From: Lepidodermella squamata
Taxonomy: Eukaryota; Animalia; Gastrotricha
Reading direction: 5' to 3'
Length of the DNA stretch: 64,000 nucleotides
Assembly (NCBI GenBank): GCA_047495785.1
Contig: JBLDXI010000055.1
Span: 744,001-808,000, forward strand
Shown in pieces: positions 15,127-64,000 of this stretch (positions within the stretch are counted from its first letter, which is position 1; the number at the start of each line of letters is the position of its first letter). The position numbers and the translations under genes were made by a program. The notes under the pieces were generated by a model. The model saw only the letters and a list, made by a program, of their open reading frames with translations, had not been told where the DNA came from and searched no databases.

Positions 15127-17584
15127 TTAGTTAATATCGTCGCTAGCTGAGTTGCTCTTAGCTCTGCTGGTAGGAAACGAAGCGGTGACGATATCGCGTT
15201 CCAGGTCAAACATGGGCGAGGGAAGGCCAGGATCGGTGTACATAACAGCGCAGTAGGTTTTTCCATCGTTCAAACAACGGCCGGCTGCAACGCCAGCGAA
15301 CTCGCACAGGGTATTTCCGCCCGTTAGAACAGACACAGGAAAGCTGGCAACCTGATTCGGCGCCTTCTTGAAATCTTCAACTTTGAAAACCTAACAAAAA
15401 AATTAAAATGGATTTTGAATAATGCAAAGATCTCACGTACGTATAAGTGATCGTTGTGCTCGAGGATGGCTTTCTGGCGCCAATAGTACAACTTGGTCGC
15501 GTCGCTGATTCGAACAACCTGGCCATCAATCTGGCCATTGTAGGTCCAAAACACCGGTTTAAGCACCTTCGAATCGACTGAAACTCCGTCATTGACAGCC
15601 ATTATTGGATAGTGAGCAACGTGGCCGCGCGATGAGCAAACCAGATTGATAAGATTCACGCTTTCTGGGTCGTAGTTCGAATCATCGACGCCGTGAACAA
15701 ACGGCTCAGGGCACAGTTTCCAACGGAAGATTGGTTCAAGATTCGGATGACGACCAGCCTCGCCGCGAGTTGCTTCGGTCGAATACACGACCACGCGGTC
15801 GTTTTCAGTCGTGAACAGCCACCGCAGCTTCGAGCTAGCGACTAGACCACCCTTGAAACTGTCCTCAGCTGCGCCGATTGTAAGCAAAGTTGGCGCGACG
15901 TCTTGTGACGATGAGTTGCCAGGCATGAAATAGTAGATTCGCCGGCTCAGCTCGCCATCGTCCTCCGAGATACATTCAGCGCTAAAATAGACGACGCGAC
16001 CATTCGTGTCACTTGAAATGTGCTCGATGTCGAAACGGAATAGATCTCGCGGTGTCTTTATCGCAAACGATCTTTTCACCTGTTTAGCCGCATCAAAAAG
16101 CTAAACCGAAAACAGGATGTCAAAAAATTGGTCTTATATTGAGGTTTCTTACAGTTATTTTGTTTTCGTCGTGAAAAACAGCGAAAAGCGAGTGAACATG
16201 AAGAGTTGAAATTCGAATTTTTTGCTGAGTGAATGTCGGTTGTTGCCTTTGACTGTTAGAAGGCGAGGCGACATCAGTAGCGCTTGAACTTGGTGCCGCA
16301 TTTTCTTGCTTCGAACCTATCAGCCAATTTCTGGCAAATCCGAACAGCGACAGCCGACTCGAACTCTGCGTCTTTTGCTCTTCCAGCTTTTGTTGACGCT
16401 TGTCAGCCGTTGATCGGCCGTGATTCGCAACAGCGTTTTGAATTTGAGCCTCATTGATTTTGTTAGCACGTTTTGCCGATTTCGTCTGGGGCGTGCTTGA
16501 GACATTGTTATTGACCTTCAACTCACCGAGTTCGATGCTCTCGAGCTGGGTAACGAGCTGCCTTAAAATTGGCACTTCTTCAAAACGAAGGAATGGAGAA
16601 TCCAGAAAGTGCAAGCACTTCTGAATCTCGCTGATCTGTAGGTAAAAAATCAGAATTATTTCATCTTATTGGGAATTTGTAATTACCGCTTGATTGTAGT
16701 GAACTGAATCGATGTATAGCGCTGCGACTTCGTCCAAATCTTGGTTGAAAATTGAATCCGCCAAAAGGGATTGTTTACGCCTTTCGAGCTGAGCCGCGTC
16801 GGGTAGGTTCGAAAATTTCGCCAATTTGCCCCGCAGATTACTCGATTGCTCCTCGGCAAATTGAGACGACGTAGCCTTAATGGCTGACATTTTAGCCCTT
16901 ACAGAATTCAGAGCGCGCTGCATTGAATTTGAAATCGATTCGAGTTGCGCTTCGATGACCAATAAATCGCGCTGAATGGCATTTCCGATTGTTGTACTCA
17001 TGTCTTTCACACAAGTGTCCAATTTCAACTCAGATGGCTGCTTGGGAAAATTAACTACGAAAATTGAGTTTCAGTCATCAAACTAACCTGAGTATTCAGC
17101 TGTAGAATTTCGTTTTTGATGCGTTCCATGTGATGAAACTTGCAGGAATAACAGAAATCCTTATCGCAGTGTCGACAACGCTTCCTTTGTTCGGGCATGA
17201 ACAGGGAGTGAATGCATACATCCGCCATTTCAGCGCTGTTCGAGTCGAGTTGAAACTGTTTCGACAGCTGGTTTTGCAGCCGCATTTTCTCAACAATGCC
17301 CTGGGCCACCAAATTTGTTTGGAAAGCTTTCAGCCCGCCAGGTCCGACGTGGCTGAGTGCTCGGCATAGCGGGCAGCGAATTGAGTTCGCGTAGCCAACT
17401 TCGCATGGCAAGTGTTCCAGGCAGCCCTGGCAGAAATTATGCGGACACCCTGGTAGAATTTTTGGAGTTTCGAATAAGTTAAGGCAGATCGGACATGTTA
17501 CATCCTGAAAGCAAATTTCAGTCCAGGTTCTTTTAACATGAAATGACTTACCGATAACATATTATAAGAAGCATTCGCAGCCAT
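15127..17584 (-). CDS. TRIM-like E3 ligase A (RING, B-box, coiled coil, putative beta-propeller)
   Basis: Micro-exon MAANASYNMLS, then DVTCPICLNLFETPKILPGCPHNFCQGCL..CPLCR (C3HC4 RING), B-box-like CIH..CRHCDKDFCYSCKFHH, helical region, beta-rich C-terminus. Confidence 0.8.
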
Positions 17585-17929
17585 TTTTCGCGATCGAAAA
17601 TTGTTTGAACCAATGTAAAGTTCTTCTTAATAAAGGCTCGCCATAAAGTTAATTTCAAGGCATGTGCATTCGTTTGTAACCATGCTGATCAAATAGAAGC
17701 TGAACTTGGCCAGCAGCTGTATACCATTGTTTACAAGACATGGTCGACTGCTTGCAAACTTGGCTCGCCTATATCGGCTTCAACTTCGATCATGTGCTGG
17801 AAATTTGTAAGCCAATGGCAGGGAATGAATAAAAGACCAAGAATAAACAAAACTAACTCTAAAACAGTTTTGAAAAAATCTTTTATTTTTCTTTCCCTAT
17901 CTCGAGAGAGAGAAAATTGGGGAGCAAGA

Positions 17930-18225
17930 ATTCGAAAACCCCATATTTTTATCATTAATGGTTACGGAGAAATTTCAGTGTCAAGTTGGTCACGTGACCT
18001 TACCTACTGATGTCACACCTGAGCGGTTATCTCGAGAACGGTGAAAGCTAGGAAACCGCTCCAAAAGAATATGTCCATCCGCGTGATGAGAAATACCTAG
18101 AAATACATTCTATCTGGCTGCAGGTGATTCTTCGTGCAAAATCGATTTTGGTGAGAGTCCCAAAATAGAGGTCCTATCTCATCATCCTAGCTCAACCAAG
18201 CCGACGAGACACTGGTCATTTATTC
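17930..18225. mobile_element. Possible short non-autonomous DNA element (HINE/MITE-like)
   Basis: Non-coding block with palindrome ggtcacgtgacc, atctcgagaacgg..aaagctagg and a GC-containing 3' segment before a T-rich end; recognised by resemblance only. Confidence 0.25.
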
Positions 18226-24786: not shown

Positions 24787-27008
24787 TTAAAACAACATTT
24801 CGGCAATTTCAATTTTGTCAGAATCGTAGACAACGCAAATGAAGACTTTGTCACCATCAGCCGGTGAAACTTCATCTTTTTTAAAGGCAGAGAATGCCTT
24901 TACTTTTCGAGGATAGCCGTTCGAGAGACCGGCAGGTAGGGCTGAAACTAGTCTCGGAGCTGTGTGGCCAAAGATCGAGTACCTCTGCGAAAGAATAAAA
25001 ATTGATGCTTTTCGAAGGATAAATCGAAGGCGAAAACTTTACGCAAATGAAGCCGTTGCGGGCGTAAAGAATGTCATGCCCATCCAAGACACAGAGCGTG
25101 TTAGTTTCGGACATTTTGAAGTAGTCATCGTCCCAAGCAGCCGAAACTTTCGTCTCCCATTGCTCGCGGTCGCATTCATGAGTTTTGAGGTAAACCTTCA
25201 GCGAGTTCAAATTACCGCTGTTTGAGTAGAAAATCGTCGTAGACAGGTCGCTGTTGAGACCAGGCGTCATGCAGTGAACGACGCACTCCTTGCCGAGATG
25301 CCGCCAGCGTTTAACCACCGAAGTTCGCTTCGTAGTCGAGTTGCAGTACTCGCCACCCTCGTACGCTACGATGTTGTCATCACCCTGGGTTGTAACAACC
25401 CAGACCGAACTTCCGGTCCAAAGCGTTGTCAAGCCACGGAAACTTTCTTGCGATTCGCCAATGGCAAATAGAGCCGGTTCGAGCGATAAATGGGAGAAGG
25501 ACGAACTGAGCGCAGTTCCGAACGCGAAATGGCAAACTTGGCGGCCCTTTGCATTTCGAGAATTGCGAACATCAGCGGTCACGTAACAAATTTCCTTGCA
25601 ATCGATAGCGAAGCCATCAACTTCAAACTTCGTCAAAACTGACGGCTTTAAAATTGTGATGTGTTTGAAAATTTCGCCGCCAGTTGTCGCGCACTAAAAT
25701 TAGTCGAAAAAATGTAAAAAATCGAAAGAAATGCTCTTTTTACTCACCGCAATTTTGTTTTTGCCGTACAAAATGGCGAAAATTCCCCGTTTAGGAACAG
25801 CCAGGATTTGCTTGACTTCTATCAGAGTCGTGACGTGATTGATGTTTTGATACATGGATGTATTTCTGGCTTGAAATCCAGACGCCGTCGTTTGACAAGC
25901 TACGTCATTTACGCTGCAGCCATCTCGATCCGGGTCGATGGCCTCATTCGGATTTTCTGGGTCAATTAGCTTGTTTTTACCCTCGCCCAAGGCCGAAGCT
26001 TCGATTTCGATGTTACCAAGAGACAGAGATTTCAGCGAACCCAATTTAGCCATCAATTCTTTATTCGCGTTGTATCGAATCCAATGGCCGTGTTTTCGAC
26101 TGAGTGACTTCAAACGCTGGTTAAAACTCTGAAGGTTCGCCACGTCCTCATAGAGCTCGCAAACCTTAGCCAAATCTTGCTTGAAAACCGAAGTATTGGC
26201 CAGATGTTTGATTCGATCCTCAAGACCTCGGGCAGGGTCGAAGTTCTTCAAATCTTCTGTGTACTTGAGCCACAAATCTTCCGACAACTGCTTGGATTGC
26301 TGGATGATTGTCTGCGTCTTTTTAACCAGCTCGCTTGTCGCCTTTTGAATAGACTCTTCGACCTGACCTATTTCAGTCTCGATTGATTGCAAATCGTGCT
26401 CCAAGGCTGTTCGAGCGCCTTTCTTGAACATGTCAACCCGACCACGTTCATCAGGGAAATTCTATAAATCGACAAACTTTAAAAATGAACCTGCGAATTT
26501 TTAGACTGACCTTGGCAAGATCGAGGATTTCCTCTTTGATTTGTTCAATGTGGCGGAATTTGCATGATTCGCAGAACAAGTTTTCGCAGTGATCGCATTT
26601 TTCTCGATCGCCCACAAGCAACAGCGTGTGAGGGCACTGCGTCCATCCTTCAACGCAGGTCGTTTCCAAGATTGCTTTGCGTTGCGCCGACATTTTCTCG
26701 ACGATATTCTGTACAATGATGTTAGTCGCAAAGGCGTCAACTCCCGCCTCGGTCAACGAATTCGACGAGCGGCATTCTGGGCACAGAATTGTCGCTTTGT
26801 CTGGTGAAATTACTGAGGAATTGTTTTGAAGTTGCTGCAAACAGCTCAAGCAGAAAGTATGCTGGCAAACTGGCATAAGTTTTGGGACTTCGAAAGGATT
26901 TAAGCATATCGAACAAGTTAAATCCTAAATATCAGGAATTTATCGACTGGGCGATAGAGGTGAGAAATCGAAACTCACCGCTAAGAGGTCTGTAGATGTG
27001 TTCATCAT
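24787..27008 (-). CDS. TRIM-like E3 ligase B
   Basis: Micro-exon MMNTSTDLLA, DLTCSICLNPFEVPKLMPVCQHTFCLSCL..CPECR, B-box CPH..CDHCENLFCESCKFRH, coiled coil, beta-rich C-terminus; last exon ends ..IEIAEMLF*. Confidence 0.8.
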
Positions 27009-30464: not shown

Positions 30465-32856
30465 TCATTTCGTGTCGAGATCGCCGATAGCAATCAAGGA
30501 TTTACTAATGTCTTCGGGATAAATGACTGCTAAATACGACTTGGGTTCACCACCATTCCAAGCGGTCATGACAGCCAGATTGTCGATGCAAGAGCTGGTT
30601 CGCTTGTAAACTGCAGGCTCGGGACATTGATGAGAGAGTTCGGGAAGGTCATACGAATTGACGTATTTCTGAAAAATATCCTTTAAATATTTATAATTGA
30701 TGTTGTCGCTGAACTCACGTAAATAACCCCATGATTCCACAGCAGAACATTTCCATTGCCGTAGCAGCAAATCTTAAGAGGTTCGCAATTCATGAATAGA
30801 CTCCTTTTCAAGAATGATTTTTCGGCAAGCGAGCGCAGATTTGAGCAATGAGGAACCACAGCAGACCAGCTTAAAAGCTTGCAGTCGCTTGAGCAGATAA
30901 TCTTCAGGTTATTCGAATCTTCGCTGCGGTCAGTATCGATGGCGTGAAGGTAAGGATTCGGTCCGAGGTACCACTTGTTGATGAGCTTGGCAGGCTCATT
31001 GCGAGGCGTATTTATGCCATCGTAAGCGACAATGTCGTTGCCTTCTGAGCTAAAAACAGTCTGAAATTCATTGCTCACAGCGATGTTGCCAAAGGTCGAC
31101 GGAAAAGTGTCGCCAGCCGTTCGAAAAACGACGGGTTCGAGTCGGTTACCGCTTTGACTCAACCAAATCCTGAACATGGCTTTTTCAAGCCCTCTCGAAG
31201 TTTGTCCGGTACCGGATAGAAATATGGTACAACGGTTGTCGGTGGAGATCATGTCAACTTGAAAGGTTGTGAACCCTTTCGGCACCAGAATGTCGATGGT
31301 TCGCGTTACTTTCCCATCTGAAGGTGAAATCATCTGTTGGAAAAGTATTAATGAATGATTGGTTCAAGTTCAAATGAAGTACCTTGATTTGATTTCCATC
31401 AGGTGAGACAGTTAGGACTGCGAATAGTCCGTGTGCAGAATGCTTCGGCATGGCGATGACTCGCTTTGCCGATGTCATCAGTCGCGTATTGATTACTGTC
31501 TTGTTGGCTTGGACACTTTTCAACGGCTGTTGTGGCTTCACTGCAAATTTGTTTGTTCGCTTAATTTCTTCAATTCGAGGCGTTACGGCAGATCTCTTAG
31601 AGGGTTGAAACGCCGGAGAAAGAGCAGCGAACAGCGTTGAATGCCTGATTTCCGGCTCGTGATGATGGAAGCTCGAATCGGCAGATGCTTTACCTTTTAC
31701 GGGCGATGAATCGAGTGAGCTGCATTTCTGAGCCTTTCCTCGACTCTCCGCGGCTGGTTGTGAGACTTGGCCGTTAAAAACTATCGACCCGAAATTTAAC
31801 GATTTGATGCATTCAAGAAGCTCCTTGAAATTGGACGTAGCGTCGAATGAAATTAGAGCTTTGTTTTCTTTCAAGTAATCTTCTGTTTCCTGAAACTTGG
31901 CGATCTGTATTTTAGAATATATTAGAAGAAATATAAATAATTGTAATTGATTTACGTTTTCTTCGTTTTTGCAGGCTTTCTGATAAATCGAAGCTGCATC
32001 AGCTAGGCTTTTGCTGTTGGGTGGAAGTTGGGACATCTCGTCGTTCAAAGCTTGAAGATTAGCCAGGTTCGACGTAGCCGAAGAGGCGAGCTGTCGTAGG
32101 CGCGTGAGTTCGAACTTGGCTAAGTTTCGAGCCTCGTCGCAAATTTTGTTCGTTCGTTCGCGAAGTGAAGCTACTACGGTGACGAGCAAAGATTGCGTCG
32201 CAGACTCGAGATGGCCTTTGATTTTATCGATGTCTCGTTCCAATAGTACCTCAACATGCTCGATGAAACTTTCTGTTGACTGGTGAGAGATCTCTGCCGT
32301 CTCGAATTTCTAGTACAAATGCTCAATTTTCGGAAATTTTTTCGGAATTTTCTTCTTACTTTTGTAAATTCGTCCAAGTCGGCTCTAATTTTCGCAATAT
32401 GCCGAACTTTGCACGAGTCGCAGAAATGTTTATCGCAATGCTGGCACAATTCTCGGTCCCGTTTTTCATCATCATGTGGGCATTTCTCCAGAGCCACTTG
32501 ATCAGTCGAAGAATGTTTCACGGTGGATGAGAACGATTGACGCAGCTGATCAGCCAAGCGCTTCGCAACTTCGTTGGTAACAAAGGAATCCAATCCCTTG
32601 GCGCGGGTGACTAAACAGGCCGTAGAGCATTCGGGACATTTAAGAATCGAGCCAGTGCCGTCGCCCCGGGTTGGAATCAGTTCGATGTTCTGGAGACATT
32701 CGAGACAGAACGAGTGGTCGCAACGAGGCAACTTTTTCGGCTCCTTGTACAAATCCTTGCAAATGTAGCAAGTAGCTAAATCAAGCTGAAAATAGCATAT
32801 AATTCAAATTTAATGACATAAGGTAGGGTGCTTACCGATGGGCAATGTAATTCCAT
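30465..32856 (-). CDS. TRIM-like E3 ligase C
   Basis: Micro-exon MELHCPS, TCYICKDLYKEPKKLPRCDHSFCLECL..CPECS, B-box CPH..CQHCDKHFCDSCKVRH, coiled coil, low-complexity linker, C-terminal domain with FGNIAVS..WYLGPNPY. Confidence 0.8.
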
Positions 32857-46830: not shown

Positions 46831-48911
46831 ATGTCGCAAGCGAATGATGCAATCATTTCGGTTGGGATTTTATTATGTTTCTTATCCTTAATATTTGTTA
46901 TTTTTCTTCATCAGAATCTAACGTGTTCGATCTGTCTTCATCTGTTCATTGCCCCGAAGTCAATGCCATGCTGCTCCCATACATTTTGCTTGCCGTGTTT
47001 GCAGCAAATGAAGGTAGAAAAACGCGGCAGTAAGCAGTTTATTCGCTGCCCAGAATGCCGAGAAGAAAATCATTTCAGCCAGAATTTCAAATCGGTCTCA
47101 GGTAATAACCAAATCGCCCCCCTTTAATCTAATATTTTAAGGGCTGCTTTCCAGATTTTCAAACAAACGTTGTTGTCCAAAACATTATCGAGGCAGTTTC
47201 CGCAAAGCAGAAGAGAAAATCTGGCGACCATTCACTGAACTCTTGCGGTCACGTTTCCGAGGCTATTAATGGCCTAAATTGCCACCACTGTGGTCAGAAA
47301 TTTTGCGAGCCTTGCAGCTACTTTCACATCGAAAAATTGCGAAACAATGCAGTCGAAAAATCATCAAAGGTTGGTTTTTTTGGATTTAATTGCCTGGTCG
47401 ATCTCATTAAAAAATTCAAAGGTACTTGAACAATGCCGAGCAGCCTGTGTCTACAGCGACCTCAAAGAAATGGAACAGAAAATCGCCAGTGATTCACGAA
47501 AAATCTCTGACCGCGTTTCAAGGCTTGGTGAGCAGCTGAAAGCAGCATTTTCTGCCCTAATCGATGCTCAAGTCACAAATTTGAAAAATGAAGTCGAAAA
47601 CGCTTCATCAGATCGATTGTCGAAACTTCGCGATGCCATTGATTTTGTGACTGATGTCGATTGCCTGGATTCATTAGAAAATCAGATGGAATTCATCAAA
47701 TTGAATTCGGTTTTAAAACTGGACTTTTCGGAAGTCATTAATTTTCACCAACAGATCGAAAAATTATCGCAATCAGTAGGCCTATCGATTTCAAAAAATT
47801 AATTATTTTTAACCAGTCTATTTTCAGTTGGATACTTTTAATTGCCACGAGGAGCGGGCTCCAATCAAATTATCCATCAGCCAAGATTTTAAACATCGTT
47901 TTGATTCGTTGAACGAAATTCCGTTAGGCTCGATCATTTCGCAGCACGAAGATCTGATATCCGAAAAAGCTGTCAATTATTTGACAGAAATTGTTCGTTT
48001 CAAGGTTGATCGGCCAACAAAGATTGTAGCCATTCCGTCTTCAAATCTTTTCGCGTTGATTTTCGACGGCAACAAATTTTGGGTAATTTCGGCCTTGATT
48101 CGCGTTCATTTCATCCCTTAAAATGTACCTATAGATCATGAATCCGGAGGAAAGCAGTGTGGTTTGTAGCCTGGTGTTCGATGGTGTTGAAGTTGATAAT
48201 GTTGCCGCAAGTGAGCGGGAAATTTTTCTTGTTGGCAACCGGAAAAGTTCCGATGGCACGATTCGTCGGGGAATTCACTCAATTTCCGTCGATTCCCTGC
48301 AAGGAACTGTTCGTACAAACGCGTTCTTAGTCACTAAAAATACTAGCCATTTTAGCCAACTTGAAGTTACTCCGTCTGGTCGAATCATCACAACTCTAAA
48401 TGGGAAATTGATTGTTGTCGATTCAAAGGGAGAAATCGACGAGAGCTCTGATTCAGCGATTGGCACTGACTTTCAACCGGACTGGAAATTACGGGGTGTT
48501 TTTGATTATGAAGATAATTCTCGAGTTGGAATCGTTATTTTTAAGCCGGATCAAGGCATTTTTATTCGAGATTTTGATTGCGAATCACTGGCCTGTCATG
48601 AAAGGAAACTGAATTTGTCATCAGAAAACGTTTCGATTCTTGGCGAGGACCTGCTACTTATTAAAAAATCGCGAATCCAGGTATTCCAAGCTTTACATGT
48701 TTCGTTCTCGTGCTGCAAGACATGAATTTAGAAATTCGCGAAATTCAATCAGCGGTCGACGTTTGCCGGAAATTTTACCTTGAAGTCGAAGTTCGACATT
48801 CACAACCTTGCATCCAGCCGATCTAAGCTTGGCAAAGATTCCGTGGCGTTACTCGGATCCGACGGTCACTCTCATTTCGTCATATTTTGCTGCCTTCCTT
48901 CCTCTTTTTAA
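46831..48911 (+). CDS. TRIM-like E3 ligase E
   Basis: MSQANDAIIS/NLTCSICLHLFIAPKSMPCCSHTFCLPCL..CPECR, B-box CGH..CHHCGQKFCEPCSYFH, coiled coil, beta-rich C-terminus. Confidence 0.8.
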
Positions 48912-49030: not shown

Positions 49031-51067
49031 ATGTCTTCGTCGGATCCTCTGCTTGCTGTAATTTTACCGACTGAAAGTGAACTTTTTGTCATAAAGTCTT
49101 TACTTCCCAGAATGTAACTTGTTCTATATGTCTCGGAGTTTTCAATCAACCGCGATTGATGCCACGCTGCGGGCACACATTCTGCCTGGACTGTTTGACG
49201 CAACTAGCAGTTGAAGGCAACGGAGTTTTGTGTCCTCAGTGTCGGAGTTTAAACCATTTCTCATCCTCGTCAGTACACGATTTTCCGATAAATTACGTCG
49301 CTCAAAACCTGGTCGATTTGCTGTCGAGTAGGAAGCCAGTTGATAACACCGAGCTTAATCGATGCTTCCATGTTGATGCTGCTGATGTTATTTGCCCGCA
49401 TTGCAACGAACGCTTTTGCGAGCCGTGTCGAATTTTTCACATGGAGAAGATGAAAATGATAACTGCGAAAAACCTGGTTGGTATTATTCGACTTTTCAGA
49501 ATTTAGATTATTTTGAATTTTTCGTGCCAGGAATTTCTCGCCAAAGTTCCTACTCCAGTTGGGGATGCTGTTGCTAGATTGAGGCTCGAATTGACCAAGC
49601 ACATTCATCCCATTGTAAGCACTGTAAAATCCGAGGGCGAAAGGTTGAAGAAAACACTGATTGATTCGATCGACAGCGAAGTGAATCATTCTATCGGCCA
49701 ACTGAACCAGGCAGCAATGACTCAGATCGACACTGCAACCGTTTTGTTCGAAGCTGCTCATAACCCTTACTCGGCTTCTTTGCTTATAAAAGAAGCCTCG
49801 AATTTGCTGAAAAACTCGGTTATTGAAGTCGATCTGCCCAAAATGGCCTATCTCTACACGGCGATTGCAAACAGAAAGCACTGTGTAATTTTTATCAGCT
49901 ATTTATAACAGTTCTGGTGTATACATTTTTCGTTAGATCGAGAAAATTCATGCTGCTTATGACCCAGGCACGAAATTGTTTCAAGTGGACTGTAACTCCG
50001 CCTCGGTTGAAACTGCGGTTAAAGAAGCATTGAAACGGCCTTGGTATCGTATGGAACTGACCGACGCAGCTTTTGAACCAATTTTACCCTGCAAAAGCAA
50101 ACGTGAATCGCAGGATTCTGAAAATTATTGCGTTGTTACACTCGATTTCGAGGAGGTGGTGGTTGGTAATTCTAGCTCGGTACCTAAAAAGTTATTTTCT
50201 TCGGGTTCCAAAATTGCTATTTGGCGTTCCGATGATACGCTAGAGGTAAATTCATTTCAAATTTCCTCCATTTTTTATTGGCTAATTTCATTAAAGGTGA
50301 GAACTGAACGGGGTTCAAGCGTTATCTACCGTTTTGCGAATCTCATCTTCACTATTCATGATATCGCCACCGATGGCTATTATGTGGCTGTTTGTGGCAA
50401 GAAGCCGGCAATGGCTGAGTGGTTGATAGGCTTCGGGGTCCCGAACAGCACCGATCACACGATCAAGCTTACATCTTTTGTAACTAAAACACCTGGTTTG
50501 ACTTTCAACGGCATGGTTATGTGTAGGCAGTGGCAAGAGTCTGTTGTGACAACCGGCTCGAGTTCGTTTTTCTTGATGCGGAAACACGGTTCTGGCGATA
50601 TGAATTCGAGCATCACGACTTACCCAATGCAGCTAACTGGAAAAATGGAAAGAAACGAAATTATCAGCGTTTTGTCTGCGGATGAAACCACCTTGAAAAC
50701 GCTGTGCCGAATCAACGATAACTTGAAGGTGTTTTCGATTAAAAACGTTGTTACCCAGGCGGGGCAACCTGCTTTAGAAATGACCTGCAACTACCTGCCT
50801 GAAGCCATGGCCTTGAAAACCTTTGATCTTATTGCGATGTATGGCTCAGACAAGGCTATAGTTGTTAAGGGAAGACTAATTTACCGATACGTTGGCTTCC
50901 CTGAACATCCAGTATTTCGCGGCTCTTTTCTACTCAATTCTCCGTCGTATCGCATAGGCAGCATTGTTGCCTACGAATCTCAGCCGAATGTCGACAATGT
51001 TGCGATGATCGTGACTAATGACGAGAACAAGACGTCTGTGGTGATCTGCAAACTTCCTCAGTATTAA
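49031..51067 (+). CDS. TRIM-like E3 ligase F
   Basis: MSSSDPLLA/NVTCSICLGVFNQPRLMPRCGHTFCLDCL..CPQCR, CFH..CPHCNERFCEPCRIFH, coiled coil, beta-rich C-terminus. Confidence 0.8.
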
Positions 51068-51268: not shown

Positions 51269-53432
51269 ATGGCGATGTTGCATGACCCTGTGATTTCGGT
51301 TGGTTTCCCAACTTATCCCACGAATGAGTTAATTCTGTTTTTCAGAGCTTGACCTGCTCACTGTGTTTCGAGCTATTCAAAGAGCCGAAATCGTTACCGA
51401 AATGCGGTCACACTTTCTGCTCTGATTGCTTGAAGAAGCTTGCTCTCGAATTCCAAGATTTGAAGTCCGCCTGCCTTAAATGCCCAAAATGTGGTGTCGA
51501 GCATGGCCTCGAATCTTCTATCGACGATTTGCGGCTCAATTTTGTTGCTAAAGAGCTGGTCGAAGCAGTGAAAAACAGTCAACAATCGAACAAAAATGCT
51601 GATAGCGGCTTGGGGTCTTGCAGTCACATGTCTCTGCCACCCTGCAACAAAGTCTTCTGCCGCCATTGTTCGCTTTTATTTTGCGAGCCATGCAAAATTC
51701 TGCACATGGAGCGATTAAAAAATTCCGCCTTAAAAATGGCGTCATCGGTTTGTTTTTCGCATTTTTTTTGTGCTCACGTTTTTCACTCGTAATTTCAGAC
51801 TCTACCAGCATGCACGGAACTGTCTTCTGCGAATAAATTAACCGAGCTCGAGCAAGTGCTTGATCGAGAAATCGCGAATGCTCAGTCGAAAATTCACGAA
51901 ATTGGAGCTCAGCTGAAGGTCAACTTGGTGCGGCTTGTTGATCGTCAAGTCAATAACACGTTGCACCGGCTGAAAAATTTTCGTAGCGAGCAAATGACAG
52001 CTTCACGGCTGATGCTTGACATTTTACAAGACAAAGGGATGTTAACTTCCCTTGGCAAGCAGCAGGCAGTTATTAAAGCGAGTTCTGTTCTCGACTTGGA
52101 TTTCGAAAGTTTGGCCTTGTTCTACCTGGAAATGACGAAAGTCTCACAAACCGCGACGATGTTCAATCAACTAATGAACGGGCAGATATTCACGTTGGTC
52201 GATAAAACCGACTCGTTGATCGCTAGCTTTCCCGATGGCTCTCCAGTCATCGACTTGAAGTTGAAAGAACCGATTACTATTGAGAAAACAGAGTATTCCA
52301 GCAGCCCGAAGAAGATGAAATTGGAAACTGGCGCGCCTCCTCAGTTGAATGTTGACCTGGAGCTGAAGCCAAATTTCGGTACTTGTGCCGTTTTCTTGAA
52401 AAGTGTCGAAATTATTGATATCACGCACCCGAAAAAGGTCGCTCAGATGCCCCACGAAGACGCATTTGTCGTTCTGCATGGAGAGAACAATATTAGCGTA
52501 AATTCTTCCATCTGAGTTTGAATATTTCTGAATTATTCCTGATTTTCGACAGGTTATTAATTTAGATGGAACTATCGGTCGATCTTATATGTTGCAACAC
52601 GATTTAATCATGCAAATTTTCGATCTCGCCGTTGACGAGACTGGTATTATGCATTTCATTGGCGTGGGAAGAGATGGCAAGTGGTGTTTGGGCGTCGGCG
52701 AATTCCAACCCGATCGTCCGATTGAATTCAGCGTTTTTCGTCTCAAGAACAATAATTACACCCTGCGGGGCATGCAAGTCTGTGCAATGTGGCCGGGTTA
52801 TGTTGTTACGACTAATGCAAATGGCATTATCGTTTTGAAATTTTTCAAAGGATCTACGGAGGTTTTGGAACTACGACCGGTCTTTGCGGCGTTTCCTTCA
52901 CCTAATAATGCTCATGTTTGCGGCGTTATAGATACGTCATCCCCGACTAATCTCAACGTATTATGTGCCATCGAGAATGTTTTTGTTTACCTGGTTTTGA
53001 GGAAGGAAACTACGCCGGAAGGCAAAGAGTTGGTCAAATTTGAAAGCCGACGTCTTGCCAACTCGCCGAGTCTCAGCTTCGATTCTATCACGTTGCTCGG
53101 GAATGGCGAGACAATGATTTCGAAAGGTTCAGTAATTCAGGTCTGAAACGAGTTTATTTATTACGATGGGAAAATTTTGCGATTTTTTACCGCAGAGATA
53201 CCAAAAGGTGCCTGAAAACATGGTATTTTCGGGTAATTATATCCCGTCATCGGGAACGGATCGTTCTCACCTGAATGAGACTATCAGAAGTGTTGCTGCT
53301 AAACGTGTTTTGGACCCGGTTAGTGGGGCTGTGAAGGAAATTGTTGCTAGCGTCAGTGTGCAAGGTCTCGACGCTGTCACGTCTACGCTCATGCTGAGCA
53401 CATTCCCTGGAAATTCGAGTTCCACTGTTTAA
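51269..53432 (+). CDS. TRIM-like E3 ligase G
   Basis: MAMLHDPVIS/SLTCSLCFELFKEPKSLPKCGHTFCSDCL..CPKCG, CSH..CRHCSLLFCEPCKILH, coiled coil, PKKMKLE, beta-rich C-terminus. Confidence 0.8.
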
Positions 53433-53537: not shown

Positions 53538-55754
53538 ATGGCGAGTTCCGCTCAAAACCAGTTAACTGCGGTAAAGTTTTCGATCTCATGTCCTATTGAG
53601 ATTGACCAAGTTTTATTCATGGATAGACTTTGACATGCTCATTGTGCCTCGATTTATTTCGCGAGCCGAAATCGATGCCGAACTGCGGTCACACCTATTG
53701 CTTCGAATGTCTAAAAAAGCTCCAACTGGATCGTAATAATCGCGGGGAAGTTTCGATTTCTTGCCCCCAGTGCCGGACGAGAAACGTCATTTCTGGGAGT
53801 ACAAAGACGGTCGCAGGTGGAAATTTGATTTTATTCGCCGTGACTGTTACTAAAGTTCTTTCTATGTCTCTAGATTTGGGAACCAACATTGTAATCAAGG
53901 GAATCCTCGAGTCGATTACAGAAGTGTCAAAGAAGGGGAAGTGTGGCTCTCTTTGCTCTCACCCGTTCGATCCGTCTTATTCGGAATGCTCGCATTGTAA
54001 TACTAAATTTTGCGAATCTTGTGCTATCGTTCATCTCGAAAAATTGAAATCTGCTGACCTGAAGCATATGAAAGATGTAGGTTTATCCCTCCCGGAAAGG
54101 TAGTTTTATTCGCTATTTTCATTCGTGCAGACCATAGAGCGGTGCAAACAGCTAAGCGAAAACACCGCGCAAACCAAAGCGAAAATGGCGTCAGAAGTCG
54201 AGAAATTTGCGAGTCTTATCGAAAGCGACATTCAAAAAGCTGGTGATGATATTCTCGCGAAATTGAAAGAAGTTGTTGACGCAAAAGTTACGAAATGGCG
54301 CGCTGAGTTGGCTGAGCTGAAATCTCAGCAATTGATATCTTTGGATTATCTGATCGAATCTTTGACTGACCCTATGTTACAGCAGACCCTTTCTCAACAG
54401 GAAGCGATTTTGTCGAAAACTTCAGTTATCGACCTTGACAAAGGCTGGTTATTGCAGACCCATCGACTAGCTGAAGCTGCTCGGTTTTCGGTAGATATTC
54501 GAAGTATTTTAATTTTTGTTTAACCTCTCATATTGACAGATTGAGTCGCTTACGCTTAAAGAATCAATTTTTGAATTCTCCAGTGATTACCGCGCCACAA
54601 TTGCCTCATTCGAAGAAGAATTAGCGAGAGTTTGTAGTGTTAGACTTGGAACTGCTTTGTTTTTGGCGTCAAGAAACAATAGTAATAGTGGCTATTCGAC
54701 TACGAAGAAGCGAAAGTTAGAGGGTTCTCCTGAAACAAGTTCAGATTCAAAATTCACACTGACTTGCATGGGGCCTAAAGCGATGGAGTTTGTCGAGGAC
54801 CAAGTTAAGCAAGTCGTGGCTTGCGTTGATGAGAACAAATTCGCTTTATTACATTCCAACAACTCCGTCAGCGTAATCAACTTAATTCAAATTTTTCAAT
54901 CGATATGAAGCCATTTTCTGTATGCTCAGATTTTTACATGGAATGGCTCGGATTTTGAAAACATACAACTTGCGCCAGATCCAGGCTCTGAAGTTCTTTC
55001 AATCTGTTCAGTCAGAGGTGGTCTCATTTTCTCAATTCAAATGAATGATGGCAGCCACGCGCTCGGTAGAATTTCGCTACCTTATAAAGAACGCAAGTGG
55101 CTCATGCGACTCACTAATATAATGAAGGGTGGCCTTGAAAGTTTGGTCTGTGGTGACGAAGCCGGTAACACTGTTTTCTCGTCTGATGGAAAGGCATCTT
55201 TACTTGTAATTCAAACGAATGCGAATCGTATTCAGCGAATCGCCATTCCGCCGACTAATTGGCAAGTCGCCGGAATTCTGAGCCAATCAGCGGCATCAAT
55301 CAAAATTCTGTTGCGTCTCTCCGGGAAATCCCTGTACCGGCTAGAGCTGGATGTTCTTGAAAATGGCAGCATCTCTGACGGGTGCATTGGCCGGTTCGAG
55401 CTGCCTTCTTTGCCATCGGAGACGATGGCCATGTTCAAAGACAATAGGCTAGTCGTAACTAATCCTTACGGGTTATCGGTAAATCTTTTCGGAATACTTT
55501 CGCTAATTCATATCCTCAAATAACCACAGGTATATCGGTGTTCAGATGCAGATGGCGATAACTGCAGAGTTGAATTGATCAATCAATACTTTCTGCCAAT
55601 ATTTGCTAGTAAAAATCCAGCACCCTTGATCTCCCACGTTGCCGTGCAAACTGTTAAAGCCGGTGGAATTTCGAAAGATTATATTATGATGACCAACGAT
55701 TTGATCAAAGAAAAGAAATCATTCATTTCTATTGAAGCTTTTCCTGTTAATTAA
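53538..55754 (+). CDS. TRIM-like E3 ligase H
   Basis: MASSAQNQLTA/TLTCSLCLDLFREPKSMPNCGHTYCFECL..CPQCR, CSH..CSHCNTKFCESCAIVH, coiled coil, KKRKLE, beta-rich C-terminus. Confidence 0.8.
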
Positions 55755-55869: not shown

Positions 55870-58131
55870 ATGGCGGCTAAAACCGATAACCAGTTAGCAG
55901 AGGTAATTAAATGTTTCCTATCCCGTCAGTTATAGTATGTTAGCTATTTGCAGACTCTAACGTGCTCTATCTGCCTGGATTTATACAATGACCCCAGGTC
56001 GATGCCATCCTGTGGGCACACCTACTGTTATGATTGTTTGAAAAAGCTGCCTGTTCAACGTGGAAATCGAGGCGACCCGTGTGTGACTTGTCCACAATGT
56101 CGTATGCGAAATTTCATGCTTGGCAGAACAAAATCCGTGGCAGGCTGGTAGTTCTCTATTTTCGTCTTCCTTAATAATTCCCTGATTTTTCAGATTTCGC
56201 TCGCAATCTTGTCGTCAAAGGCATCGTAGATTCAACGAAAGAAAACAATAAGAAGAAAGATTCCAACTTGTATTGCCCGCATCCGTTTGAAAAAATTCAC
56301 TCAACTTGCCCTCATTGCGACCGGCTTTTCTGCGAGTTATGCGAGGTCGTTCACAAGGAAAAATTGAAACAATGGATCTTGAACAAATTGCCAAACGTTA
56401 GTTCTTTTAAAAGTATTTTTCATTGCTATATTTTCAAACGAGCAGGCTAACGATTGTTGCAAAAATTACGGGATTGACCCAGCCGGCAAGAAAGCTGAAA
56501 TAAGAAAGAAGATCGAGCAAAGTGCTGATGCTGCAACTTCAGGCGTTCGCAGCGCCGGCAAGAAATTAATCGACGCTTTAACCTTGGCAATTAATTCAAA
56601 AATCGGAGAAATGTGTTCAGAGGTCGAGGCGATCAAAGCAGATCAAATTGCGAATGCCGACCTGTTGGTTGACTGTCTTTCCGATCCGAACCTGTTGTTT
56701 AGTTTGAAACAACAAGAAGCAAGCGTTACGAAAAAATCTGTGATTGATATCGATGGCGAGTTTTTGTCCAGCTCGTTGAATTTTGTTCGCGTTGTTTCTC
56801 ACACGGTATTTTATCTCTGACTACTGACTAGGGTGGTTATTGATCTGATAATTTCATTTTTAAGGCCGCGCTTCTCAGTCCGGACAGACCTACAGTAAAT
56901 TTTGTCGAAAATTCGGCCTCTCAGTACTCTATTTCATGGCTCTCAAAATTCGGCGAAGTCAAGCGCGCTGACAATGTGTTAACTATTCCCAAAAAGGTTC
57001 AGCCATCTAAAAATCAGGTTCTTCAACCAGCCAACCAAATAATAGAAACGGGAGCGAAACGCCGCTTAGTCGATTGTTCAGTTGAGGCGCCGTTGTTAGC
57101 GCCACCTTGTTTAGTTAGATTCCTGCAGCCTTTGTCGATCATTCAGCTGGATTCGATAAAGCATGTTGTTGGTAGCATTGAAGGAGACTCATTCATTGTT
57201 TTGCACGGCAAATCTCAAGCTTCGGTAATATGATTGTTTGATTGAATTTATTGTTGCTAATGCATCTATTTAAAGATTTTCAAATTTGATGGCAGCATGT
57301 TTAAACAGTCGGCATGCTACACCCTGTCCTTAGAAGCTAATATCGAAATTCTTTCCGTCTGCTCCGTTCGAGGCGGCTTGCTATTCGCTGCCAAGAAAAC
57401 AATGCAAAATGTTAAATACTTCAAAATTTCGAGATTCACGTTCGAATCTGGCAAAACGGAACACCTGGTCACGATAATTGATATTGAAAGCGGCTTCGAG
57501 AGCATCTTGGCTGTTGATTCTAATGGGGATTCTGTTGTTTCCACCGAAAATCCTCCTAGTGTTGTACTTTGCCACACTAAACGCGGCAAAGAAGAAATTA
57601 CACGCTACAAAATTTCGGATAAAAAGATGCGAATTTTCGGAGTTTTATCGGTCAACTCAAACTCAACGGCGTTTCTCTGCGAAGAAGAAAATCGACTGAC
57701 TCGAATGGAATTACCTGTAAACGGCGCGGGCGAGATTGGAAAGGTTTCGTTACACCCAAAATCTGTTGAATTTCCTGGCTTGGTTTGCCATGGATCTGCT
57801 GCGATTTGGAACCAGAAGCACTTTGCTATCAGCAGGGGAAATTTGATTTCGGTAAAGATACATTTCACTCCTCGTGAATTCTAATTTTGAACTTGATGCT
57901 TTTCAGAGATTCGAATATTCGCAGGATCACCTCGATGGCATAAAGTTTATTGGGCAGCTCGTGCCAGATGCCATCAAGCAAGACAAATCTCTGCTCAATT
58001 CTACGATTACCAGCTTAGCTTTTAAAACAATCGTATCCATCGGTGCTACTAAGGAAATGGTTGCATTGGTTCTTAAATCGCCTAAAAGTGGGCAAACGTG
58101 CCTTGCTTTTGAAACTATCCCAGATCTCTAA
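55870..58131 (+). CDS. TRIM-like E3 ligase I
   Basis: MAAKTDNQLAE/TLTCSICLDLYNDPRSMPSCGHTYCYDCL..CPQCR, CPH..CPHCDRLFCELCEVVH, coiled coil, AKRRL, beta-rich C-terminus. Confidence 0.8.
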
Positions 58132-58237
58132 CTTCCAATCTTTCATCGCTTTCCCGTTTTATATTAATCTTGTTTTTGTATTTCAATGAACTAAAATTAT
58201 AGGGGTGTTTGTGATAGGTATATTCAATAATTGAAGA

Positions 58238-60509
58238 ATGGCTGAAATTCTTGGCGGGGTAAGCTATCCTAAGCTTATATTTTTTTTCAATGCTCTTTGG
58301 ATTGGATTTTCAGACTCTAACCTGTCCGTTGTGTTTTGAGCTGTTTAAAGAGCCAAAAACGTTGCCCGTCTGCGGTCACACCTGCTCTGATTGCTTGATC
58401 AATTTGCCTTTGGATCGAACTGATTTTCCCGAGCAATGCTCGCTTACTTGCCCTCAATGTAAGAAGAGCAATTTGATCCCAGCTAACATTTCCGGTTTGT
58501 TTCCTTATGCGTTGCTCTTATGAACAACCCGTGAAAACTGGCAATTTATGAACAGATCTCGGATCAAGTGTTGTAATAAAAGAAGTCATCAAGAGAATGA
58601 GTGAAAGAAGTCACGATGACAAGCAACCAGGATCCACCTGCCCACATTCAAATCTGCCGCGGATATCACCGGACAGCGCTATTTGTTCGCATTGTGATAA
58701 ACGCTTTTGCAGTTCATGCGAAGTTTACCATAAAGAGATCATTAGACAAGATGCCGTGAAGAAACTTAAATTGGTAATCTAGACTGCTTTTTACTCTAGT
58801 ATTTGATTGAAAATTTGCTCATTTTCTTTCAGGCTCTCGACAATTGCAGAGCTTTGAAATCAGTAATCGATGAGCGAAAGAAGAAATTCGAGTCGAACAT
58901 TGACCAGGGTGCTAAAGCGAGTCATGCTGAAATTCGTGAGTTCGGGGCCGAATTGGTCCAAACATTTGCGAATGTTGTGAATGTGAATGTGTGAATGTGA
59001 ATGTGAATGTGTGAATGTGTCGAAAAATGGTGCGTGAGACTTGACGAATTGAAATCGGAACAGTTAAAGTCAGTCAATGTCCTAATCGATTGCCTCGTCG
59101 ATCCAATGTTTCTTTCGGCTGTCGAGACCCAAGAGGCTGTTTTATCGAAAAATTGCGTGGTTGATATAGATAAGGTCTGGCTAAGTCATGCCAATAAGCT
59201 TGCAGATTCGATTCAATTTTCGGTAAATTTACTTCTTGACGTAGTAAGTGGTATTTATCACTTTTTTACAGCTCGATTGCTTAAATGCGAAAAAATGTAC
59301 TTTCAAGTTTTCAAAAGACCAAGTGAAACTTACGACCGCCTTAGCGACCAATTTGGATGAAAATTGCCCTGTTCACTCGGCTGAAAATGCCTTCAATTGC
59401 ATGGGAGAGCTTTCTGCTCGCAAAACGTTGACTGAGCCTGAAATAAAAAAACGGAGGTTGGATATATCGGAAGAATCAGTCAACAAACGTGCGTTTATTG
59501 CATCTGGAATGGTAGCAATCGCGGCCATTGAGCTCGATGCTGTGAAGCAAGTCGTTTCAACTGTCAATAAAAATTGTGAGGGGCAGTTTTACGCTTTGGA
59601 TTTTAACAATAATATAACTGTAATTTACTCGGTGAAATTATATGCAATGCTAACTGTTTGCATTTTCAGGTTTTGAAATACCTGGAATCTGGGTCTTTTG
59701 CAATTCTTCGCAGCTATTCACTAAATCTTAAGCCGAATCTCGAAGTTCTTTCAGTTTATGGCCGCTATAATCTTCTGACGTACGCTTTCAGAACAGCGCC
59801 GGGCGTGTTGCCGTGCTCTGGCGGAATTGTTCGACGTTATGTTTCAGTTGACACAACCGAAAAAAGTTTGTGGATTGCTGATAGAGGGCAATGGTTCAAT
59901 AGCCTTCATATCAACGATAGATTCGTTTTCTTGGCAAATGAAACTTGCAAACGTCTAATTTTTGAATTGGAAACCAGGGAGCTCCTCGAGCTTCAAGTTT
60001 CCGCCCGAATCCTGAAAATTCTCACTGCAAAACAACTGTGCTTTGCAGTACAATTGTTTTGCTTGGGCGAAGATGGTCTTTTTTCGTTCGCCGTGCGAAA
60101 ATCTGAGGATGGTCTTTACACTTCAATACCTTTAACTCTATCGACTCCACCGGACTTCTGCCCGACGATTATCGTACCTTACGGAAGAGATGAGATATTC
60201 ATGGCTAGTGGCCTTAAAATTGTGGTATGATTTTTAGCAAGCTAGAAGTGAAAAGATTACATTCTCATTTTACTCTAGAAATTCCGATTGTTTCGAATGA
60301 ATGAGAAGGAAAAAGCGTGGGATCTTCAGATTTTGCAACAGCTTATTCCAAGTGCTATCAACCAATTACCTGAAAACGCTTCAATTTCTGGCTTTGCATT
60401 GCGGTCAATTTCTGTTGACGGCAAGGACGTTATCTCTGTTTTGATAGCAATAAATTCACCCGATAGCAAAAAGACGACTCTATTCTTGGATGCTATCGTT
60501 GAAGCTTGA
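58238..60509 (+). pseudogene. TRIM-like E3 ligase J, interrupted by a microsatellite carrying in-frame stops (probable pseudogene, or assembly error)
   Basis: MAEILGG/TLTCPLCFELFKEPKTLPVCGHT-CSDCL (one RING residue missing versus paralogs); TGA at 58992, 58998 and 59004 inside the coiled-coil exon; the rest of the gene is intact. Confidence 0.65.
58971..59020 (+). repeat. (GTGAAT)n imperfect microsatellite inside a coding exon
   Basis: aatgttgtgaatgtgaatgtgtgaatgtgaatgtgaatgtgtgaatgtgt. Confidence 0.85.
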
Positions 60510-60693: not shown

Positions 60694-62884
60694 ATGTCGA
60701 ATAGTTTCGACTCAGATTCGGACGACCCGTTGGTTCAAAATCTGTCGTGTTCTCTATGCCTCAGCATATTCAAAGACCCCAGGTCTATGCCAAACTGCTC
60801 TCATACGTATTGTTTGGAGTGCTTGAAACAACTTCCTGTCGAACGAAGGGGATCTTCAGCTTCCGTTAAATGTCCGCAATGTCGAGTGGAAAACTTCTTT
60901 ACTGGTTCAACGACAAACGTAAATGGTATTGTCGATCAGAGAAAAATTAATCTGAAAAATACGAGTATTGTTTTCGCAGATTTCCACGCAAATGTCGTTG
61001 TGAAAGGTGTTATCGAATCTCTTAGCGCGAAACGGAAAAAGGTTCGGCCTGAGCCTAGTAATAACTCATGTTCTCATCCCAACGAACCGGTTTGGCTACA
61101 ATGCAAGCACTGCGATGCAAGTTTTTGCGAGCTTTGCGGGGTTGTACACAAAGAAAAGCTGAAAAAGGCGGCGGTTGAAGCTGCATCACAGGTTTCCGCT
61201 ATTTTCTTGAATTCGTTGGTTTTCAATTGAGTTTCTAGGCTTTCAATGACTGCGAGAATAAAAGTCGGGCGAAGAAACGAGCCAATGAAGAAAAAATTGA
61301 GAATAGAACCCGGGAGGCGATTAGGAAAATTTATTCAACACGTGACGCGCTTCTACGATCTTTCACCGCTCACATTGATGCTATTACTGTAAAACTCGAC
61401 AATGAAGCAAGGTTAATCGAGCGAGACGAGAAAACGGCACTTGGATTGATTTTCGATTCTTGCATGGACTCGAATGTCGTAAATATTATGAAATCTCAAG
61501 CCGACTTGGTTCGTGCCACTTCGGTTTTAGACCTGGACGCGGATTATTTGGCGAAATTTCATCAGCAAATGACCCATTTCCAGGCATCGGTAACGTATGA
61601 CTCGGTAAATTAACACGTATTTTAGCGGTTTTGCATTTTAGATGGCTGATCTTGAAAAACGTGAGCCTGCTGAGTTGACAGTGGTCGACGATACGGAGAC
61701 TGTTCTCCCGAAATTGATTGCCGAGTCGGGAAAATTTTGCGATTTGATAACCATTAATTCTGGTTTCGATCTTAATCTTCTGAAATCGCGCCCTGCAAAT
61801 GAGCAAAAGAAAACGAGCACACCATTTAAAAAGCCACGGCTTTTGACGGGCGAAAAAGAGCAACAGAAGCCTGGATTTTTGTTGAGTTTCTTGAAACCGC
61901 TGCTCTATATTGAGCTGGAAGGAATGAAAAAAGTGGTCGCTTGCTCGGAACCGAATACCATTGCAGTACTTCATGGCAAAAGCCACGTTAGCGTAAGTTG
62001 ACCCGCCTTGTTTTCTGATCGATTTTACCACTATTTTCAGATTTTGGTTATTCAAGGCAATACGATTAAGACGACTCAGAAGTACCAATTCACCACGACA
62101 ATGGACGTCGATAACATTCGTGCTGTGAAAAATGGATTTGTCTATACCGTTACTAAACAGGAAAACAACAAATTTCAGCGCGGCATCGGTTACTTTCAGG
62201 CGAGCCCTGTTCCGAATGTCCCGCCTACAAATAGCATTACTTGGATGACTGAAAATTCGCACGCTCTCGAACAGCTTATAACATGTGATGACTGGCCGTG
62301 GTTCGCATTCTCCTACCACAACCGGAAATTGATGGCGATCGATATGCGAAAAGACCATAAACGAAGTCATTCGTTTACGTTCGACAATTCCCCTCGGCTG
62401 ATCGGCGTTTTGGAGTCATCGGCTGACAGGGTGTCGATTCTTTGCTCGTACGAGAAGGGTTATGCGGAATGTGTTTTTACATCTCGAGCTCCGCTCTTTG
62501 ATGTAGTTGCATGCAGTTTCAATCACGTTTCTTCAACCAGAATTGATGGAGAAATCGCTACGCTTGAAAAATCCTACGCTTTGGTACTCAACTCCAATCG
62601 AATTATCGTTAGTTAATATTATGGTGGTTGTTTTATGTCAGTTTTGGAATGTTTTTTACTTACAGAAAATCGAGAATTTTCCCAAAAAACCGGCTCTAGT
62701 TGGAAGCTATGTGCCAAAAACTGTGACTCACGCGACGATTGGTGAAAATTTGCTAATCAGAAGCTTGGCAGTAAAAACGATTGCGGATGCTCAATCACCC
62801 CCGAAAGAAGGCGTCGCTATGATCATTCAGAGTAGCGATGGAAAATTGCGTCTTATTGTCGAATCTTTCCCAGAATCTTTGTGA
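60694..62884 (+). CDS. TRIM-like E3 ligase K
   Basis: MSNSFDSDSDDPLVQNLSCSLCLSIFKDPRSMPNCSHTYCLECL..CPQCR (no first intron), CSH..CKHCDASFCELCGVVH, coiled coil, FKKPRL, beta-rich C-terminus. Confidence 0.8.
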
Positions 62885-63034
62885 TATTGGCCATTTATTG
62901 CTTTGGTGATATTTGTGAATTGTTTTAAACTGAGTAAAAGGCTTAGCTAGCTACATTTTCATTTAAATTTAAGATTTTCACGGTTTAATAGCTCTACTTT
63001 TACACGCTGTTATTATGTCATACTTCTCTCAATA

Positions 63035-64000
63035 ATGACGTCATATGAAGAGGTTGGTGATAACTTTGTGCTCCAAATTGTTCCATGTTGACCCTTTGCC
63101 GTTTTAGCTTGTAACTTGTTCTGTTTGCCTCGCGATCTATGAAGATCCGAAGATTTTACCGGCCTGTCCTCACACTTACTGTCTGAAATGCCTGGAGGGC
63201 ATGGCCGCCAAGAATGGCTATATAAATTGCCCAGACTGCCGTACACCCAGTCTTATTGGCAAAGACGGTCCTCAAGGTGAGTGAGAAATCAAGTTTTTCA
63301 ATGTCAAGTTACGCTGTTTTTGTAGGGTTCAAGTCGAATATTCTAGCGCAACAAGTGGCTGATAAAGTGCGAAAAGGGGACGATGGTAAAGTGTCAACCA
63401 ATGGAAAAGCGCCGAAAATAGTTGGCATCGCTCAAATTAAACAGCCTCAACGCATTGTTACGTCTGATAATTGTTTCTTGGTAGTTCACAGCGACCTGGA
63501 AATTTCGGTGAGTTGCATTTTAATCACTCGAATAACTCGAAAAAATCGCAATTGACCTTCAGATAACGGACGATAAAGGAATTGTTTCGAGCAACTTTAA
63601 AATTGAAAACCCGGAAGATTTGGAATACTTAATCATCGATGACGTAATTGCAGTTGGCGATCAAATCTTTTTCTCTTGTTCCTGTTCAGCTCCGAACTCG
63701 CCTCGCCGTATTTATCGCTTCTCTCGGTACTGGACAGGCCCTATTCGGCCGATCATGTTCACTTGGACCGAAATTGGGGACGCGTTTAGAGGACTCGCAG
63801 CCTCTCTGCCACTTGATATCTTAATCACGTGTGTAGATACTGAAGTTATCGGGTTCACCTCATTGACTGCATTGTCGAAATATGAGATGGCGTCGATAGC
63901 CTACCGTTGGGAAATCGGCGCAGCTCCTCATCTTCTTGGTTTGATGCCAACCCCAGAATTGAGAATAATCGCGTCTATAAACGGGAAATTAGCTACCGTT
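63035..64000 (+). CDS. RING plus beta-propeller-like protein L lacking B-box and coiled coil; runs off the window end
   Basis: MTSYEE/LVTCSVCLAIYEDPKILPACPHTYCLKCL..CPDCR../GFKSNILAQQVADKV, then directly IKQPQRIV..FLVVH..DAFRGLAAS..RWEIGAAPH, homologous to the C-terminal domains of A-D. Confidence 0.75.

Follow-up and report, generated by a model that had tools for sequence, protein, structure and literature searches.

A stretch of 64,000 nucleotides (nt) from the genome of the gastrotrich Lepidodermella squamata (contig C55:744001-808000, forward strand) contains twelve intron-containing genes of one family, four on the minus strand (A-D) and eight on the plus strand (E-L). With two further members outside this stretch, M and U2, the locus holds fourteen, and we consider it likely that these genes are tandem copies encoding TRIM-type E3 ubiquitin ligases with beta-propeller tails. 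Their N-terminal halves match TRIM2 and TRIM3 in profile searches, and two structural models of the C-terminal domain resemble propellers. We refer to the whole 64,000-nt stretch as the window and give positions in window coordinates; the genome searched was the 121.2-Mb assembly of this animal (151 contigs, very short introns, GC content of about 42-43%).

Gene models of the array

Gene models were made with a small splice script and then checked on the DNA, some junctions of C, E, I, K, L and M being set by eye or with changed settings. One junction of C and the terminal exon of M remained unresolved in the models. The members are as follows.

Gene A, 15127..17584, minus strand: micro-exon, RING and B-box, coiled-coil, linker and hairpin, propeller main (15441-16100) and terminal exons, from the splice model and Pfam.
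Gene B, 24787..27008, minus strand: micro-exon 26979-27008, RING and B-box exon 26511-26924, coiled coil, linker and hairpin 25748-26461, propeller main exon 25043-25693, terminal exon 24787-24984, from reading of the DNA, the splice model and the RING match in Pfam.
Gene C, 30465..32856, minus strand: start of the RING and B-box exon at 32785, propeller main exon at about 30719-31333, end of the terminal exon at 30465; the RING-to-coiled-coil junction, left unresolved by the script, was placed by eye (GTAAGA donor after "...DEFTK").
Gene D, 33062..35635, minus strand: micro-exon 35612-35635, propeller main exon 33319-33966, terminal exon 33062-33265.
Gene E, 46831..48911, plus strand: micro-exon 46831-46860, RING exon, phase-1 intron, B-box exon, propeller main exon 48135-48680, terminal exon 48732-48911.
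Gene F, 49031..51067, plus strand: propeller in one open frame at 50099-51064, which includes an in-frame intron of 51 nt (50246-50296).
Gene G, 51269..53432, plus strand.
Gene H, 53538..55754, plus strand: an in-frame, stop-free 57-nt phase-1 intron within the RING and B-box open frame, at about 53817-53873.
Gene I, 55870..58131, plus strand: propeller main exon 57276-57851, set by homology with H.
Gene J, 58238..60509, plus strand: RING with the unusual spacing C-G-H-T-C, in which one residue is missing between ligands 4 and 5.
Gene K, 60694..62884, plus strand: no micro-exon, ATG inside the RING exon; an in-frame 54-nt intron at about 60927-60980.
Gene L, 63035-64321, plus strand: RING, short linker and propeller, running past the window end at 64000 to a stop at 64321.
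Gene M, 64515 to about 68000, beyond the window.

Open frames were kept across 4-7 exons per gene in all 12, and none of the 12 gene models showed a frameshift or a premature stop. Leaving aside two junctions that the script did not resolve, the introns measured 46-64 nt and were bounded by GT..AG. The start micro-exon, predicted beforehand for every gene except K, was found for A-J and L, where it is followed by a GT..AG intron of 47-57 nt. An acceptor-like TTTAG stands directly before the ATG of K. Seven genes (E, H, I, J, K, L and M) had a phase-1 intron between the RING and the flanking helix; A-D, F and G had none there. Every gene had a phase-0 intron directly after the hairpin of the propeller, and all but F (none there) and E (missed by the scripted model) had another before the terminal exon. 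The stop-free in-frame introns of F, H and K are read through by plain lists of open reading frames (ORFs); their retention would add 17-19 residues to the proteins. From E to M (48911-64515), nine family genes stand head to tail on the plus strand with stop-to-ATG spacers of about 105-202 nt (E-F 119, F-G 201, G-H 105, H-I 115, I-J 106, J-K 184, K-L 150 and L-M 193).

RING, B-box-like finger and helical segment

A regular expression for the second half of the C3HC4 RING returned 11 sites, and J was contributed by the genome search (58317-58496); the twelve RING-bearing genes of the original prediction were all found where it had placed them. RING matches (zf-RING_UBOX, zf-C3HC4), most of them above the cut-off, were obtained in Pfam for 9/9 N-terminal exons, in a scan that covered A-H and K and left out I, J and L. 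The F.(T/S)N motif reported after the RING was present in 12/12 genes and aligned with the LxxNxx(I/L) helix of TRIM2 and TRIM3, which reads L-x-x-N-x-x-I in TRIM2. Six uninterrupted N-terminal exons shared 31-40% identity, with the eight RING ligands and the pattern of the second finger invariant.

Searching PDB with the N-terminal profile gave TRIM2 (1.3e-16) and TRIM3 (1.2e-14) as best matches, followed by TRIM56, TRIM25 and TRIM32. The alignments with TRIM2 and TRIM3 extended through the RING and the post-RING helix into the B-box, in agreement with the original assignment to TRIM-like RING ligases. Moreover, the profile matched the genome's own canonical TRIM-NHL gene (contig C42) with an hhalign probability of 98.5%, in an alignment that ran through a B-box.

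The second finger, C-x-H-x(7-12)-C-x-H-C-x4-C-x2-C-x3-H, was found in A-K. It had been described as a shortened B-box without the final His. The second terminal His is indeed missing, but an invariant extra His in "C-x-H-C" brings the possible ligands to eight. Among Pfam models, ANCHR-like_BBOX and the Trim66 B-box were reached only at an expect value (E) of about 0.05, and we call the finger B-box-like because the Pfam B-box model was not reached. It is followed by a helical exon of about 115 amino acids (aa), alignable across paralogs and poor in proline, with proline-free runs of 51-121 aa. By a crude test of the a and d heptad positions, 6/8 helical exons scored above 95% of shuffles; the only coiled-coil signals in Pfam were sub-threshold matches to the Golgin and crescentin rod families. 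Both the finger and the helical segment are absent from L. The linker exons (ten scanned) contained no Pfam domain, filamin included.

The C-terminal domain

The C-terminal domain of every gene, about 300 aa long and placed behind a low-complexity linker, is encoded in three pieces: a conserved beta-hairpin closes the linker exon, a main exon contributes about 200 aa, and a terminal exon adds about 65-85 aa. The hairpin and terminal pieces are not visible as domain parts in plain ORF lists. We proceeded exon by exon, and the propeller profiles contain main exons only, with hairpins and terminal exons outside. A MAFFT alignment that included hairpin and terminal-exon fragments put these on internal blades; it was discarded and not used for folding.

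Pfam gave no match on ten C-terminal ORFs, neither to NHL nor to WD40. Comparison of the C-terminal domains by phmmer joined only the subsets A-C-D(-B), F-G, G-K and H-I, and profile iteration united A, B, C, D, E and L. All main exons (12/12) could be aligned with a common motif pattern, and the main-exon profile retrieved M, which is not part of it, at 1.9e-17. Because of the shared motif pattern, the recovery of M and the common exon structure, we treat these domains as one family. Against PDB sequences, the propeller profile found chance matches only, with pyruvate kinase at E 0.065 and the others no better.

Two AlphaFold models were made, one of the F domain (50099-51064, 322 aa, single open frame) and one of P0001, a metagenomic M-type protein of 273 aa described below. 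Both were all-beta with repeated strand quartets; the F model had a predicted local distance difference test score (pLDDT) of 63.8 and a predicted template modeling score (pTM) of 0.62, and the pLDDT of P0001 was 80-93 over residues 1-170. Foldseek returned only beta-propellers for both models, with E of about 1e-4 (WD40, Nup120, RCC1, LDLR/LRP YWTD, strictosidine synthase and paraoxonase). The best VIA matches were Sec12 for F (Z 13.8 over 239 aa) and Trm734 for P0001 (Z 13.3 over 162 aa), and the next rows were tied, mixing six- and seven-bladed propellers, the COP1 WD40 among them. Going by these models, the C-terminal domain is a beta-propeller, which the first reading of the DNA had anticipated; the structural likeness to WD40 is generic to propellers. 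The strand pattern of P0001 suggests five blades within the 273-aa piece and one that is finished by the upstream hairpin, that is, about six, and the modeled propeller is probably six-bladed.

A putative panel of ligases

A ligase of this kind would work as follows. The RING would recruit a charged E2, the helical segment would form the antiparallel dimer typical of TRIM proteins, and the propeller would act as the substrate receptor, fourteen variants giving fourteen specificities. The array would then be a panel of ligases, each with its own target (protein or RNA), and not necessarily an immune family that is actively racing. Gene L may represent a cut-down RING-propeller form analogous to malin (NHLRC1), a RING-NHL protein related to TRIM32 (PMC3160408). 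As in malin, its RING is followed directly by the propeller, without B-box or coiled coil; unlike in malin, the propeller is not NHL by sequence, and the array-mates of L keep the full putative tripartite motif.

Several points weigh against this interpretation. The ligase activity of all members is predicted only, and all exon models are predictions from DNA. The zf-B_box model stayed above E 0.1 in all nine N-terminal exons scanned, and the heptad test behind the coiled coil is crude. The RING of J has H-x1-C instead of H-x2-C; going by this spacing, J may be catalytically impaired and possibly not an active ligase. The F model contains 17 intron-encoded residues, residues 171-273 of P0001 have a pLDDT below 50, and because both models include large low-confidence parts, the blade number is tentative, as is ring closure.

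Distribution of the propeller and of the N-terminal module

Across the genome, the propeller profile detected the 12 genes of the window and M, and a subgroup profile added U2, about 13.7 kb upstream of the window; no match was obtained elsewhere. A hidden Markov model search of 1.84 billion protein representatives yielded one real relative, P0001 (2.2e-15). A second candidate, P0002 (2562 aa, E 7e-4), was dismissed as a low-complexity chance match that looks like a bacterial repeat adhesin. P0001 is encoded on three ENA metagenome contigs (e.g., ERZ23486787 scaffold_6110) beside a 511-aa ORF with RING, B-box, coiled coil and acidic linker. The ortholog of M at 7895-10220 of ERZ23486787 scaffold_6110 is almost intronless, has the same architecture and comes from an environmental eukaryote. 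Its neighbors are genes for dynein heavy chain and PfkB, and no second family member was seen on this 12-kb contig. In the genome of the window, PfkB is not syntenic with the locus but lies on contig C3. A word-based protein search with the F propeller ORF gave no match, and one with the 511-aa metagenomic ORF returned only itself, its acidic low-complexity linker having probably flooded the candidates; P0001 searched against JGI metagenome contigs found nothing with exact peptide patterns, which are of low sensitivity.

Genome-wide, the RING/B-box exon was matched at least 158 times, across many clusters. Sampled relatives (C2:2336500-2341000, C42:3152000-3156200, C46:1044500-1048900 and C28:1920400-1924400) carry ankyrin repeats, a Neuralized (NHR) domain, or true NHL repeats, the last of these together with canonical B-boxes. 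The contig of the window carries an ankyrin-tailed TRIM-like array 21.5 kb downstream. Such arrays resemble the window genes in their homologous RING and B-box-like module and in their tandem arrangement, but differ in their ankyrin tails and form a separate clade in a tree of the N-terminal module, with a Shimodaira-Hasegawa-like approximate likelihood ratio test (SH-aLRT) value of 99. This tree (133 columns) is weakly resolved and was used for branch lengths and two well-supported groupings. The TRIM scaffold has exchanged C-terminal modules repeatedly in this genome.

Near-identical N-terminal exons were seen on contigs C28 (1920425-1920829) and C33 (103770-104174), with branches of 0.004-0.009; the two clusters may reflect a very recent segmental duplication or uncollapsed haplotypes. 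Upstream of the window, a short gene, U1 (C55:729500-730164; window -14500 to -13836), has a RING and a post-RING motif of the family type and then a tail rich in proline, without B-box, coiled coil or propeller. Within the window, at 38537-39818 on the plus strand, two ORFs encode Cys/Pro/Tyr-rich repetitive proteins (repeats such as "CYEEVV.P.RV.C"), both ending in PPRVFFR.

Relation to TRIM-NHL proteins

The window genes could instead be extremely diverged TRIM-NHL genes, with a propeller that goes back to the six-bladed NHL domain in an ancestor resembling TRIM2/3/71, and with a role as RNA-binding post-transcriptional regulators like Brat or LIN-41, a reading that we consider unlikely. 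TRIM2 and TRIM3, the best N-terminal matches, belong to the NHL class, and the N-termini of the window genes are homologous to that of the genome's own TRIM-NHL gene, with which they group weakly in the tree (SH-aLRT 80). The nearest named clusters in ESM-Atlas were NHL and SGL six-bladed propellers (score 0.93, with only 144-159 shared features). The estimate of about six blades would also suit an NHL origin, and six-bladed YWTD and Pizza propellers were among the top structural matches. These top matches, however, were as often seven-bladed WD40 as six-bladed. In addition to the lack of an NHL match in Pfam, a genome-wide search with PF01436 found 28 repeats elsewhere and none in the cluster. 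When the propeller profiles were compared by hhalign with six NHL pieces and with the NHL region of the closest canonical TRIM-NHL gene, the probability was at most 1.1%, no better than for reversed-sequence controls. NHL descent of the propeller is a lead only.

TRIM-NHL proteins (class VII: TRIM2, TRIM3, TRIM32, TRIM71/LIN-41, Brat and Thin) do share with the window genes the order of RING, B-box (B-box-like in the window), coiled coil (putative in the window) and C-terminal propeller. In TRIM2/3/71, a filamin/ABP280 domain separates the coiled coil from the NHL domain. The window genes lack filamin (ten linker exons scanned), which also argues against NHL descent, and their propellers lack the NHL signature; their B-box-like finger has C-x-H instead of C-x2-H and a single terminal His. 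Furthermore, they stand in a 14-member tandem locus, whereas TRIM-NHL genes are conserved single genes.

Divergence between paralogs and conservation in an ortholog

Paralogs had a median identity of 40% in the RING, 39% in the B-box and 23% in the propeller (range, 15-32%); propellers aligned with shuffled partners gave 21.7 +/- 3%. With phmmer linking only subsets, the C-terminal domains are barely alignable between neighbors, as first noted. Since synonymous sites are saturated at these divergences, the ratio of nonsynonymous to synonymous substitution rates was not used for paralogs.

The original prediction had taken this divergence for arms-race evolution in an intracellular antiviral or anti-transposon surveillance family, its propeller evolving fast as in TRIM5 or fish finTRIMs. 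We regard this as improbable. The tandem array, the far stronger divergence of the putative binding domain than of the RING or the B-box and the near-orphan status of the propeller family would be consistent with it, and other TRIM families are known to have expanded under positive selection (PMC2657112, PMC3228819). Against it stands the sole ortholog pair, M and its metagenomic counterpart, in which the propeller is the best-conserved part (57% identity, compared to 54% for the RING, 51% for the B-box and 42% for the coiled coil). As a distance gauge for this pair, the ribokinase-like PfkB-family gene was 62-76% identical to this genome's copy. Judged by these alignments, the propeller is strongly constrained in at least one orthologous line and almost unrecognizable between paralogs. 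Moreover, the terminal branches of the window genes were long (0.46-1.58 substitutions per site) even in the RING and B-box, whereas other clusters hold near-identical copies with branches of 0.004-0.25. Unlike those clusters, and unlike a birth-and-death family, the array showed no young near-identical copies and no visibly broken ones. Neither the arms-race claim nor the surveillance role was supported by these observations. Old duplicates that each keep their own target would fit better than an ongoing arms race, and we read the history, from the sequences at hand, as old duplications, then divergence of the receptor domain, then maintenance.

The fish finTRIM genes and the primate TRIM5/TRIM22 cluster resemble the window in being tandem TRIM arrays that vary most in the C-terminal binding domain (PMC2657112, PMC3228819). 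They have B30.2/SPRY domains, young copies and pseudogenes, and measured positive selection; the window has propellers and old copies, and the one ortholog comparison shows conservation.

In its fullest form, the immune reading would have a propeller family arise, or diverge past recognition, within gastrotrichs and multiply on a TRIM scaffold into 14 receptors for foreign or selfish molecules (a viral protein, double-stranded RNA or a transposon product), each of which would be marked for ubiquitination. We hold this to be quite improbable. If it were true, the locus would be a propeller-based counterpart of the SPRY-based TRIM5 and finTRIM systems. To our knowledge, immunity has not been studied in the phylum Gastrotricha.

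That the copies are decaying, nonfunctional or artefacts of gene prediction, without a current role, deserves hardly any credence: the one-residue deletion between zinc ligands in the RING of J, the reduced form of L and the terminal exon of M that was not located would be in keeping with it, but the open frames and canonical introns of all 12 genes, the invariant zinc ligands of the six aligned N-terminal exons, a divergence far too deep for unselected ORFs to stay open and the conservation of M in another species all speak against it.

Comparison with other ligases and significance

The interpretation as propeller-tailed TRIM-type ligases has a further parallel in COP1/RFWD2, RFWD3 and TRAF7, ligases of like design in which a RING and a coiled coil (putative in the window genes) are combined with a substrate-binding propeller. 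Indeed, the WD40 domains of COP1 and RFWD3 were among the structural matches and the COP1 RING was among the sequence matches. In contrast to these conserved single-copy ligases, the window genes have a TRIM-like RING and B-box-like finger and no WD40 signature (ten C-terminal ORFs).

TRIM ligases are classed by their C-terminal module, and those catalogued include SPRY, NHL, COS-FN3, PHD-bromo, MATH and ARF. Here, a front half like that of TRIM2 and TRIM3 is joined to a propeller with almost no detectable sequence relatives, and sister genes carry ankyrin repeats, Neuralized domains or true NHL repeats. As it stands, the locus presents a well-defined orphan domain family with a ligase hypothesis; confirmation of the immune reading would make it a receptor family of a new kind. 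Its 14 natural propeller variants on one scaffold are useful for studying how specificity diversifies, and this little-studied spiralian phylum shows how freely the TRIM scaffold swaps its substrate receptors.

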